From assembly GCF_032444005.1 (NCBI RefSeq), contig NC_091282.1, positions 1,105,274,001 through 1,105,338,000 of the forward strand: 64,000 nt of DNA, in the 5' to 3' direction. Each line of letters starts with the position of its first letter. Position 1 is the stretch's first letter. Shown here piece by piece: positions 11,901 through 23,900 of this stretch. The position numbers and the translations under genes are program-made. Source of the DNA: Ranitomeya imitator. Taxonomy: Eukaryota. The notes under the pieces were generated by a model. It had not been told where the DNA came from and did no database searches. It saw only the letters and a program-made list of their open reading frames with translations.

Positions 11901-14900
11901 AACTCTGGGGGAGCAGGAGAGGAAGGTGATCGCAACGTTCAGCTTTCGATGATGGGGCGCTGAACCCTCCAGCCCGTTAGTGCACGAGTAATAACATCAC
12001 CAGTCATTTGCCTAAAGAAATGCACAAATTCATCCCATCAAGAGGTCCTCCTGTGAGAAATGCAAAATTCCCCATGATGCATGTGCTGAATTTAGTATAC
12101 ATAGTATGGAGGGCAGACAGGTAAGAGAAAAAGGGAAGACAGCTCCTAGTCAGATGGAGGATTATTCACTGCGTCATAATATCATGATTATTCACACGTC
12201 TCCGTGTCAGATTTGTGTGCAGAGCTGTGCATATGCATAAAGTGCGTGCTGCAGAGCTGTGTGTATATAACGTGTTTCAAATTATGCAAATTGGATTTAG
12301 ATCTAAAGGGAATCTGTCAGCAGGTTTTTGCCTCTTCATCTGAGAGCAGCCTGATATAGGCAAAGAGAAGCTGAATCCAGCGATGTATCACTTAGTTTTA
12401 TGGGTACTGCCGTTTTGACACAAACAGGGTTTTTAGACTGAGCAATGTAGCAGAGCTGAAAGGGCTAGCTCCACCCCACCAGGCTCTGTATGTATCATAT
12501 CCATAGACAGTGAGCTGCCTATCACAGGAGGGGGCGTGTCTGACTACCTGGCACGCCCTGCTGTGTCCCAGCAATGATAAGCTCCTGGTACTAAAACAAT
12601 CATTACAGGTAAACAAAACCTGAGCTTGGCAAGAGCGGCAACACTGAAATCTGTGTCTTACCCCTACAGCATGCTGTCTTCAGATTACATAGCAAAAATC
12701 TGCTGACAGATTCTGTTTATTTTCCAAATAACCTCCTGGATGGTAGTGTGCGTCAGGGCTCCGGGAATCACTGAACTTGTGATCACAAACCTGTGACAAT
12801 TTGTCAGGTGAGCCCAAGTAAAGGAACATTACTTAAGAAGGACGTTCAAGAAAAACAAAGAAAACTAATCTATCCAATAAACTTTATTAAACAAAATAAG
12901 GATAAAAGACTGACACAACACCCAGACCCCTCTAAATGGGGGTGGGTCAATTAAAAAACCTGGCCCAAAAAGATTATAAAGGGCAAAGGGTGGGAGGGAC
13001 AACGGGGCCGATAGCAAAAACCCTACACGTCCCTACAAATATTCCCTGCCTGTCTGCGGAGGTTGGCACCCTCTTGGACGCAATATGGCGCCCCCGCTCA
13101 CCGTCGACTCACCCTTAAGGCCCTATAAGTCCCTCTACATGTATAAAGATACTATACCACAAACAACACCCAATACATGGCCTAACCAAACTCGGGACCA
13201 AAAAAAGAGAAAAAACACCAGGTAGTGATTCACCAGTAAAGACAAACGGTCTGACCGTACCAATCCCTAATGCTAAAGTATAACGCCTGAAACTAAGGCT
13301 AATACACCCTAAGGAGTCCCTAACCGAGTCTCCCTACCTGTCAGCGGAGGTTGGCACCCTCTTGAACGCAAATGGCGCCCCCGCTCCTCGGCGGCTGCCC
13401 CTATTAACCCTGGCTGAATCCCTAAAAGAAGATATATCGGGATACTAAATACGGGTGGTGCCTTAGGGGCTATACTAGTGACCCAGATAAATAGGTCCCT
13501 ATAGCTCGGTCAGACCCTAAAGATAAAGCAAATAGCAACAATACTTAAACCAATGCTTGCACGGCAATAGGAAAGATGTATATAACAGCTTAACGAATAC
13601 AACTATATTATGATCACAGTTGGTAAAGTACTCGTATGCAAATACAATGGTTGCGGGGAAAAAAAAAAAAAAACACACAACTGGTGAAAAACATATAAAC
13701 TTAAAAGGCCTGAAACACTTATCTGTGTTCAGGTCTCGCCTCTACGCGTTTCCCCCCCATGATGTGGTTCCTCAGGAGGCATATGGGAAAAAGAGATACT
13801 GTGTGAATAGATCACATCAGAGATACATGTTGTGCCTGGTTGCAGGTCAAGGAAACACTGACTAAAACGCCATTAAATAGTCTCCTCCCCCCCTCCCCAA
13901 TAGGGACAAAGGGTTAAGGGGCTAATTACCACCTGTGTTCGCCGCTTAAAAAAAAAAAAAAAAAAAAAAAAAAAAAAAATATTCATGTTCATATTCATGT
14001 CCACCCCGCTCCAACAGCGCATGTGCCTGGGCGCAATGTTTCTGTCCGGCATCTCATCCCTGGACAAACAGCAAAAGCGCATCGACGCCGACTTAAGGCT
14101 AATGTAAATAATGCCATAAACACCTTTGCATACAGCTGGGTGCGATATTCATACCCACCCAGCTGTATAAGGGACACCCATACTGGAGCCACAGCAACGG
14201 AGGACAACTATACCGGGGTTACACAGGGACATTAAACCACACATGTTAAACATTATAGCTGGCACATTTTGCGCCCTAGAAGCGTAGTGATTGCGCCATT
14301 GGTTATATTTAAAGGACCCCTTACATGTAATCACAGCTGCACCGTCACATACACATGGCCCAAGTATAATATTATGGACACCTATTGGCAATCCCTTAAA
14401 ACCTGGCGACCCTTACATGTACTTAAGAAAAAAAAAAAAAAAAAAAAAAAAAGAAGATATGGCGTTTACAAAAAATATTGGCATGTGATGCTGTACTACC
14501 CACCACACAACACGTGGTTTCCATGTATAACTTATAAAAGCACCACATACAAATAGTTTGTTAACCATGTACACTAATTGTATAAAAATAACAATACATA
14601 TAGATGTATTTTTATGCATATATCACCTCCATATGATATTTAAATTCTGAAAAATACACTCAATATATAGTGTACATGTATAAGTATGCGGTGAACTATA
14701 GTCAGCAGAGACCAAAAAACCCGCAACCACACTACCCTAAGTCCATTAAACGTAGATGATAAAGAGTATGCACATTGTGCACCACATTCCTATACTCTTA
14801 TGAACATTCCTGCAGGCCATCTACTAGGTCTGCAGCGCTGTATTATTTTAAATCAGGGGAAAAGGGGAGCGAAGACAAACCTGACGAAAACAATTCACAC

Positions 14901-20900: not shown

Positions 20901-23900
20901 GTTGTATTCGTTAAGCTGTTATATACATCTTTCCTATTGCCGTGCAAGCATTGGTTTAAGTATTGTTGCTATTTGCTTTATCTTTAGGGTCTGACCGAGC
21001 TATAGGGACCTATTTATCTGGGTCACTAGTATAGCCCCTAAGGCACCACCCGTATTTAGTATCCCGATATATCTTCTTTTAGGGATTCAGCCAGGGTTAA
21101 TAGGGGCAGCCGCCGAGGAGCGGGGGCGCCATTTGCGTTCAAGAGGGTGCCAACCTCCGCTGACAGGTAGGGAGACTCGGTTAGGGACTCCTTAGGGTGT
21201 ATTAGCCTTAGTTTCAGGCGTTATACTTTAGCATTAGGGATTGGTACGGTCAGACCATTTGTCTTTACTGGTGAATCACTACCTGGTGTTTTTTCTCTTT
21301 TTTTGGTCCCGAGTTTGGTTAGGCCATGTATTGGGTGTTGTTTGTGGTATAGTATCTTTATACATGTAGAGGGACTTATAGGGCCTTAAGGGTGAGTCGA
21401 CGGTGAGCGGGGGCGCCATATTGCGTCCAAGAGGGTGCCAACCTCCGCAGACAGGCAGGGAATATTTGTAGGGACGTGTAGGGTTTTTGCTATCGGCCCC
21501 GTTGTCCCTCCCACCCTTTGCCCTTTATAATCTTTTTGGGCCAGGTTTTTTAATTGACCCACCCCCATTTAGAGGGGTCTGGGTGTTGTGTCAGTCTTTT
21601 ATCCTTATTTTGTTTAATAAAGTTTATTGGATAGATTAGTTTTCTTTGTTTTTCTTGGTTTAATACTAATTTGGATTATCAGATATTATACTTTCTTAAG
21701 AAGGACGTTCCACATAACTAAGCAGCCACAGGTTTCACATCTTATTTGAAGTGTTGGTGCCTCTGGAGTCCCAGGAACCTCAAGGTGTAGGATCCTCCTG
21801 AGACTTGTAGTTGTAAATAAACCTACTATTCAGCCACCACTAAACAGTGCTCAAGTGCTGAAATGGATGCAGATTACTGATGAGTGTCGAGCAACCCTGG
21901 ATGGTCCAGATGGATGGATTAATGGATGGTTGGTGGATGCCACCATGTCCCAACAAGGCTGCAACGTCAGCAAGAAGGTGGAGGAGTCATGTTTTGGGCT
22001 AGAAATCAAGGGAAAAGAGTTGATAGAAACTTTATATACTTAAAAGGCCCTGACTGACCACTTTCTTCCTTGTTACCAAAAAGAAGAACTGTGCCATCTG
22101 CAAAGAATACCTCTGAGTCATTGGCTGCTATGGGCATAAAAGGAGATAAACTCATGGTGTGGCCACCATCTTCCCCGACCTCAACCCTATAGAAAACCTT
22201 TGGAGTATCATCCAGCACAAGATCTATGAGGGTGGGAGGCAGTCCACATCAAAACAGCAGCTCTGTGAGGCTATTCTGACTTCATGCAAAGAAATACAAG
22301 CAGAAACTCTCCAAAAACTCACAAGTTCAATGGATGCAAGAATTGTGAAGTTGATATCAAAGAAGGGTCCTATGTTAACATGCAACTTGGCCTGTTGGGA
22401 TGTTTTTGAGTGCACACTCCACAAATGACCATTTTCAGTTCTTTGCAACCTCAGATATTTGGAAACATTGTTGTGCATAATAATGTGAAGCAGCATTTTG
22501 AGGGTTTTTTTTAGGTTTGAAAAAAATACTGTTAATAGAGGTCTGTCCAATAAAATGTGATTTATCCTCTAACGGCCGATGATGTGAACATTATACCGAT
22601 TCATTTGCATCGACCATTTAGGAAAATCAGAGAAAAATAGCATTTGGATAATTTGGAAAGCGGTATACAGTGTGGGCGCTGCCGAGCTATACGTGTGTAT
22701 AATGCGTGCTGCAGAGCTATACGTGTGTATAATGCGTGCTGCAGAGCTATACGTGTGTATAATGCGTGCTGCCGAGCTATACGTGTGTATAATGTGTGCT
22801 GCAGAGCTATACGTGTGTATAATGCGTGCTGCCGAGCTATACGTGTGTATAATGCGTGCTGCCGAGCTATACGTGTGTATAATGTGTGCTGCCGAGCTAT
22901 ACGTGTGTATAATGTGTGCTGCAGAGCTATACGTGTGTATAATGCGTGCTGCCGAGCTATACGTGTGTATAATGCGTGCTGCAGAGCTATAAGTGTGTAT
23001 AATGCGTGCTGCCGAGCTATACGTGTGTATAATGCGTGCTGCAGAGCTATACGTGTGTATAATGCGTGCTGCAGAGCTATACGTGTGTATAATGCGTGCT
23101 GCAGAGCTATTTGTGTGTATAATGTGTGCTGCAGAGCTATACGTGTGTATAATGCGTGCTGCCGAGCTATACGTGTGTATAATGCGTGCTGCAGAGCTAT
23201 ACGTGTGTATAATGTGTGCTGCAGAGCTATACGTGTATATGTGTGCTGCAGAGCTATACGTGTGTATGTGTGCTGCAGAGCTATACATGTGTATAATGCG
23301 TGCTGCAGAGCTATACGTGTGTATAATGTGTGCTGCAGAGCTATACGTGTGTATAATGTGTGCTGCCGAGCTATACGTGTGTATAATGTGTGCTGCAGAG
23401 CTATTTGTGTGTATAATGCGTGCTGCAGAGCTATACATGTGTATAATGCGTGCTGCCGAGCTATACGTGTGTATAATGTGTGCTGCAGAGCTATACGTGT
23501 GTATAATGTGTGCTGCAGAGCTATACGTGTGTATAATGCGTGCTGCCGAGCTATACGTGTGTATAATGCGTGCTGCAGAGCTATACGTGTGTATAATGCG
23601 TGCTGCAGAGCTATACGTGTGTATAATGCGTGCTGCAGAGCTATACGTGTGTATAATGCGTGCTGCCGAGCTATACGTGTGTATAATGTGTGCTGCAGAG
23701 CTATACGTGTGTATAATGCGTGCTGCCGAGCTATACGTGTGTATAATGTGTGCTGCCGAGCTATACGTGTGTATAATGTGTGCTGCCGAGCTATACGTGT
23801 GTATAATGCGTGCTGCAGAGCTATACGTGTGTATAATGCGTGCTGCAGAGCTATACGTGTGTATAATGCGTGCTGCAGAGCTATTTGTGTGTATAATGCG

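Follow-up and report, generated by a model that had tools for sequence, protein, structure and literature searches.

The window analysed here comprises 64,000 nt of contig NC_091282.1 of the dendrobatid poison frog Ranitomeya imitator, contains not a single N, and carries between positions 12832 and 21710 an insertion made up of two copies of a Penelope-like element (PLE). The two copies are joined head-to-head, such that both 3' ends face outward, and the whole unit is enclosed by one target-site duplication of 16 bp. Very probably, the insertion constitutes a single, recent and still polymorphic retrotransposition of a canonical endonuclease-bearing PLE with a Neptune-type linker, in the standard head-to-head layout of these elements. 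From left to right, its parts are the following (RT, reverse transcriptase; ORF, open reading frame):

12832-12847, no strand assigned: left copy of the 16-bp target-site duplication (CTTAAGAAGGACGTTC), one of its two occurrences in the window
12848-14894, minus strand: 3' untranslated region of the inverted copy, reverse complement of 19610-21656, its tail-less 3' terminus facing outward to the left
14895-16856, minus strand: stop codon and C-terminal 653 codons of the RT-endonuclease ORF of the inverted copy, 5'-truncated at the equivalent of 17645
16857-17255, plus strand: 5' end of the forward copy with the remnant of an RGG-rich ORF1, from the translation of the frame (stop codon TAA at 17253-17255)
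17255-19606, plus strand: intact RT and GIY-YIG endonuclease ORF of the forward copy (Pfam RVT_1, GIY-YIG)
19607-21656, plus strand: 2.05-kb 3' region of the forward copy, containing three long runs of T as well as an internal duplication spaced by 288 nt (21102-21173 / 21389-21461)
21657-21694, plus strand: 38-nt tail, present in the forward copy only, the left arm being without it
21695-21710, no strand assigned: right copy of the 16-bp target-site duplication (CTTAAGAAGGACGTTC), the second of its two occurrences in the window

The forward copy has a length of 4.8 kb and the inverted copy of 4.0 kb. The arms that they share (12848-16856, 4009 nt, and 17645-21656, 4012 nt) are reverse complements of each other. 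They are reported by a repeat finder as three collinear inverted blocks of 99-100% complementarity (12847-13681/20823-21657, 13659-13975/20522-20838 and 13952-16856/17645-20549), and blastn returns a single alignment of 4017 columns at 99.7%. In a pairwise alignment of 12848-16856 with the reverse complement of 17645-21657, the arms differ by one substitution (13247 vs. 21257) and by the lengths of three homopolymer runs (A32/A28, A15/A21 and G4/G5), which amount to a net difference of 3 nt. All three methods bear out the arm lengths and the inverted relation given in the initial annotation of the window, and the differences listed there are exactly those of the pairwise alignment. The run-length differences could go back to independent passes of the RT, to later slippage or to sequencing error, and do not discriminate between the models considered below.

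Concerning the content of the arms, 653 codons of the RT-endonuclease ORF and about 2.05 kb of the 3' region are present in both orientations, in agreement with the 653 codons and the 2-kb 3' region described at the outset as duplicated, and the inverted arm contains nothing that the forward copy is without. The ORF of the inverted copy extends on the minus strand over 14895-16862; its portion 14895-16856 is 100% complementary to 17645-19606. Between the arms lie 788 unique bases (16857-17644), which form the 5' part of the forward copy. Since these bases separate the arms, the block is only approximately a palindrome: the original designation as palindromic is justified with regard to the inversion of the arms, but not in the strict sense. 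Besides this insertion, no further copies of the PLE family were found within the 64-kb window.

The frame coding for the RT is open on the plus strand from 17039 to 19606 (855 residues). It contains the Pfam domains RVT_1 (residues 375-505) and GIY-YIG (residues 750-807), and its translation exhibits the motifs YIDD, CGNCSFC (in the linker) and GVVY...TCTC...YIGKT. Judged from its translation, with RVT_1 and GIY-YIG in one ORF, the element is a canonical endonuclease-bearing PLE, and its initial identification as Penelope-like is thereby upheld. Within the CCHH zinc-finger feature, the two cysteines between GIY and YIG are clear, and the histidines (GEH, ARH) were assigned by eye. The CGNCSFC motif is situated about 40 residues upstream of GVVY. 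Neptune and Nematis have a linker motif of the form CX2-5CxxC, which Penelope/Poseidon lack (PMC8557442), such that the element would be classed as Neptune-type by this motif, which Nematis also has. The best match in the public protein collection is 99% identical and likewise derives from R. imitator, and the next matches, at about 55% identity, are frog proteins with the same domains from other dendrobatids and from hylids. As the alignments of homologues do not begin before about residue 50-79 of the frame, the ATG at 17255 is likely the real start of the RT-endonuclease.

A DNA transposon with terminal inverted repeats is ruled out by the RT and GIY-YIG coding capacity, by the asymmetry of 38 nt between the two ends, and by arms consisting of 4 kb of a coding unit. 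A hammerhead candidate at 20712-20765 (pattern match at 20722 on the plus strand, mirrored at 13749 on the minus strand) shows helix I, the core and a palindromic loop 3; it is not claimed here, its helix II being poor and its fold no better than that of shuffled sequences.

Upstream of the RT frame, the frame of ORF1 is open from 16857 to the TAA at 17253-17255 and codes for an RGG-rich peptide, but possesses no start codon. Its stop codon overlaps with the ATG at 17255 (ATGTAATG at 17250-17257). In an R. imitator protein, residues 59-156 share 77% identity with the remnant and are preceded by 58 further residues. Logan contigs from four runs were compared with positions 12400-18399 of the window. 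Family contigs of high depth (record 6 of run X1; record 15 of run X15, with 531 further bases) match it from 16856 rightward, and their leftward sequence is unlike the window. The 30 nt upstream of 16857 in these family contigs occur nowhere in the window, and the upstream sequence of the family is therefore distinct from the 3' region of this insertion. Both copies are thus 5'-truncated, the break in the forward copy falling within ORF1 and that in the inverted copy 788 nt beyond it, within ORF2. The truncation of the forward copy, evident from an ORF1 without start codon and from family contigs that continue upstream, had been missed in the initial annotation. A related R. imitator gene model merges the frames of ORF1 and RT and skips about 38 codons including a conserved N-terminal motif; this merged model is probably an artefact of prediction. 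Canonical PLEs are described as elements with a single ORF, and an organization with two ORFs is unusual.

At the right-hand end, the forward copy extends 38 nt beyond the point at which the left arm ends at the duplication, with an ambiguity of 1 nt at 12847. The earlier statement that the left arm starts 38 nt short of the forward 3' end is accordingly correct, 21657-21694 being found on the right only. In contigs of other copies (run X3, from another organism, and run X16), the reverse complement of 21658-21694 (37 nt) is situated directly before the arm sequence, and the contig of run X3 starts exactly at the end of the tail. The presence of the tail in other copies, and a contig that starts precisely where it ends, identify it as a genuine family terminus. 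Poly(A) is absent at both outer ends.

Two further observations concern the 3' end of the family. In run X1, the 3'-terminal approximately 600 nt of the element (12800-13400, corresponding to 21100-21657) have a contig depth that exceeds that of the ORF region by a factor of about 10-20, which suggests heavy 5' truncation or abundant non-autonomous derivatives with a common 3' end. Moreover, joints from 13072 to 13332 represent family copies that possess one unit of the 288-nt-spaced internal duplication; the copy in the window has two.

The 16-mer CTTAAGAAGGACGTTC occurs in the window only at 12832-12847 and 21695-21710, the chance expectation being 0. A contig of 530 nt, found in two further samples of the species (runs X15 and X16) at a depth of 17-18, matches 12511-12847 and continues past 12847 with 193 nt that correspond exactly to the window from 21711-21740 onward. 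This contig represents the empty site, in which the 16-mer is present exactly once. Relative to the window, the empty haplotype has differences at 12579, 12734 and 12735. As the empty sites hold exactly one 16-mer, the repeat, already recognized in the initial annotation as a direct repeat bracketing the block, is a real target-site duplication. That annotation had further proposed a single event and had named empty sites with anything other than one 16-mer as the finding that would speak against it; the empty allele from both samples carries one, and the block therefore goes back to a single insertion event. Since the empty site is present in other samples of the species, the insertion is young and polymorphic.

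The left flank (12304-12800) is a high-copy repeat, for which the contig depth in run X1 is in the thousands and loose ends are numerous at 12660 and 12713. With its imperfect inverted ends of 57 nt (12304-12360 / 12663-12719), it resembles a MITE (miniature inverted-repeat transposable element). The low-copy sequence shortly beyond this MITE-like repeat holds the 16-mer target.

With element identity, anatomy, duplication, empty allele and the truncation of both copies established for this insertion, we turn to its mechanism, for which we lean with some caution towards priming from two nicks. Under this model, which is plausible and agrees with in-vitro work on PLEs, each 3'-OH would have primed on RNA of the same source element, and the resulting cDNAs would have been joined. 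The GIY-YIG endonuclease would set staggered nicks 16 bp apart, in the bottom strand at the left edge of the 16-mer and in the top strand at its right edge, an arrangement of nicks without which no duplication would arise. Extension of the bottom-strand 3'-OH on element RNA would produce the forward copy abutting the right 16-mer, and extension of the top-strand 3'-OH on element RNA the inverted copy abutting the left 16-mer. The forward cDNA would begin at a distal start site and thus include the tail, and the inverted, tail-less cDNA at a proximal site 38 nt upstream. Two incomplete cDNAs with different stop points would then be joined at their 3' ends with a microhomology of at most 1 nt and subsequently filled in, as in end-joining. 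The overlap at the central junction amounts indeed to at most 1 nt (T at 16856), and the family contigs also have a T before 16857. Both arms carry 12976A, a minority variant of the family (G is the majority, 9649/10169 depth in run X1), which argues for both cDNAs having come from the same source lineage. The integration mechanism of PLEs is still described as undefined (PMC8557442), and a twin-priming model for PLEs was not found spelled out in the literature searched.

Alternatively, a cDNA primed at one nick could have given rise to both copies, if, about 788 nt inside, its 3' end folded back or the RT switched to the growing cDNA strand and copying then proceeded in the outward direction, with the endonuclease resolving the product at the tail boundary. 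Such self-priming has been proposed for head-to-head PLE repeats in rotifers (PMC3846280), the tail has earlier been attributed to an endonuclease-mediated resolution of an intermediate (PMC8557442), and an inverted arm that holds nothing absent from the forward copy is what this snap-back would leave. However, there is no microhomology between the 3' end of the cDNA and the site 17645, nor a palindrome at the junction. The copied-back strand should, moreover, continue through the tail into the target primer, whereas the arm stops at the tail boundary; this boundary matches a second start site of the RT in vitro, while snap-back needs an extra cut at exactly the same place. We consider snap-back possible, but rather unlikely. 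L1-type twin priming is ruled out by about 4.0 kb being present in both orientations and by the lack of poly(A) at either outer end. If instead the structure had been inherited, i.e., if an RNA spanning a pre-existing head-to-head copy had been reverse transcribed in one pass, the same source-lineage variant would be expected in both arms, as is found; yet an RNA with a 4-kb hairpin would have to be copied in full, and the left end should correspond to a transcript start or to a random truncation, whereas it is the tail-less terminus of the family without foreign flank. This origin is very improbable and is rejected. The same applies, with still greater confidence, to an origin from two separate insertions into one site, or from recombination or inversion that took place later between two copies, in favour of which nothing specific can be cited, given that a single 16-bp duplication brackets the block, that the empty allele joins the flanks exactly, and that the arms are nearly identical.

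Several points weigh against our interpretation. The mechanism is read from a single product, and neither the microhomology of 1 nt at the junction nor the differences between the arms separate priming from two nicks from snap-back. Among the listed contigs of the four runs, none crosses 16856/16857 or the filled left junction, and a 90-nt query centred on the central junction found no indexed public run with more than 2 of 4 sampled words, such that for the internal structure and the centre the assembly is the sole source. The insertion contains no direct pseudo-LTR (LTR, long terminal repeat; a partial tandem). Rfam searches revealed no hammerhead ribozyme in the element (E<=1) or in the whole window (gathering score), apart from a chance-level match to RT-2, although these scans covered a 5'-truncated copy, from which a motif upstream of ORF1 would be missing. 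The absence of the central and the filled left junction from independent contigs and indexed runs is also what an assembly artefact would predict, in which a fold-back or mis-join made the inverted arm or misplaced the centre, and tandem and inverted structures of PLEs are known to trouble assemblies (PMC8557442). Nevertheless, both element ends abut a perfect 16-bp duplication with a single-copy empty site in other samples. As two outward 3' ends adjoin the duplication copies, the left end being the inverted 3' terminus, an internal inversion junction is required in any case. Furthermore, one substitution and three run lengths set the arms apart, which were thus not copied from one read, and the same layout recurs in the literature. 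An artefact therefore appears most unlikely. Returning to the priming from two nicks, this locus, together with young insertions of like layout, may represent two-strand target-primed reverse transcription, in which, within a dimeric PLE complex, a separate cDNA would be primed at each nick and begin at either of two fixed start sites; we regard this generalization as evenly poised.

Other repeats in the window differ in kind. The inverted repeats at 40509/42291 and 49071/50472 do not show the PLE layout and belong to DNA transposons of the Tc1/Sleeping-Beauty type. The one at 49071-50682 is apparently intact: its inverted repeats of 211 bp are 100% identical, its CAGTG termini are flanked by TA, and its transposase is an uninterrupted ORF of 340 aa with the domains HTH_SB, HTH_Tnp_Tc3_2 and DDE_3. 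A second Tc1-type element (40509-42496) has perfect inverted repeats of 206 bp and a split transposase frame, and in a third (37888-39334) the pieces of the transposase are situated in two overlapping ORFs. In a nested palindromic block at 46174-48589, the outer arms (about 790 nt, 96%) enclose a 288-nt palindrome at 47157-47800; a separate palindrome of 383 nt is found at 44751-45133. Satellite arrays occupy 22678-24075 (47 copies of a 30-nt unit), 53400-58594 (58 copies of an 88/179-nt unit, 5.2 kb, G+C-rich) and 62618-63464 (27 copies of a 31-nt unit). An ORF of 317 aa at 7167-8120 contains a reverse transcriptase domain (RVT_1, E 8e-13) from another, unrelated retroelement.

The organization of the insertion is that of typical PLEs. 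According to Craig et al. 2021, PLE insertions are highly 5'-truncated (PMC8557442), and an adjacent inverted, 5'-truncated copy of variable length, enclosed in one duplication and with a tail of 30-40 bp at one end only, is the typical structure of these elements (PMC8557442; PMC3846280). Arkhipova et al. 2013 designate the combination of an ORF, pseudo-LTRs and an adjacent inverted pseudo-LTR in one duplication as "the typical Penelope structure"; they describe a 31-bp tail on one of the inverted repeats, confirmed a duplication from the allelic site without insertion, and put forward self-priming (PMC3846280). The novelty implied in the initial annotation is therefore not given, and its contrast with the short inverted terminal pieces of Drosophila Penelope reduces to a difference in arm length, not in kind. 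The insertion is an ordinary, if unusually clean, example of a published architecture and would not surprise a specialist. What is new is the empty site in two other samples, hence a real duplication, the truncation of the forward copy in ORF1, and the spacer of 788 nt.

Equally to the Penelope of D. virilis, to Pen2a_Av of Adineta vaga and to Naiad/Neptune/Poseidon, the frog element combines an ORF for RT and GIY-YIG with an inverted 5'-truncated copy that immediately precedes the forward copy, all of it within one target-site duplication of variable length and with a tail at one end only. There are, however, some differences: whereas the inverted pseudo-LTR of Pen2a_Av comprises 181 bp (PMC3846280), the inverted arm in the frog is 4.0 kb long and includes 653 codons plus the 3' region; and, unlike the typical PLE structure, the frog copy is without a direct pseudo-LTR, possesses an upstream RGG-rich ORF1, and has no hammerhead detected in the part present. 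With its exact duplication, its empty allele, its nearly unmutated arms, both 5' breakpoints visible and its one-sided tail, it represents a clean, dated product of PLE integration. A genome with many young, polymorphic copies lends itself well to distinguishing priming from two nicks from snap-back, and, should two-strand priming be true, the arm breakpoints, tail sides and junction microhomologies within one genome could settle the integration mechanism of PLEs. In frogs, the total length of Penelope elements, and not the number of insertions, correlates with genome size (PMC12822217). Each event of the kind described here adds almost two unit lengths and would produce such a pattern of length rather than number, so that it may matter for genome growth in frogs.

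Concerning the mechanism, the closest comparison is with PAc, the Poseidon element of Anolis carolinensis. Its protein was found in vitro in 2024 to cleave and extend both target strands, unlike R2 and L1, and its reverse transcription begins at two adjacent internal start sites without a difference between strands, the tail being the sequence between them (PMC11167929). Two-strand priming of this kind, together with two start sites spaced by the length of the tail, would give the outward ends seen in the frog, one tailed and one tail-less. Yet PAc belongs to a different clade (without the linker zinc finger), and its start sites are situated inside the start of the ORF, whereas those of the frog element would lie at the end of the 2-kb 3' region. 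The likeness to L1 twin priming consists in a second nick that primes on RNA and in an inverted 5' segment joined by microhomology within one duplication. L1 twin priming, however, inverts without duplicating, its segments being different parts of one RNA, whereas in the frog 4 kb are present twice and both cDNAs would derive from the RNA 3' end. Likewise, the endonuclease of L1 is APE, whereas that of the frog element is GIY-YIG, and the frog element has no poly(A) end.

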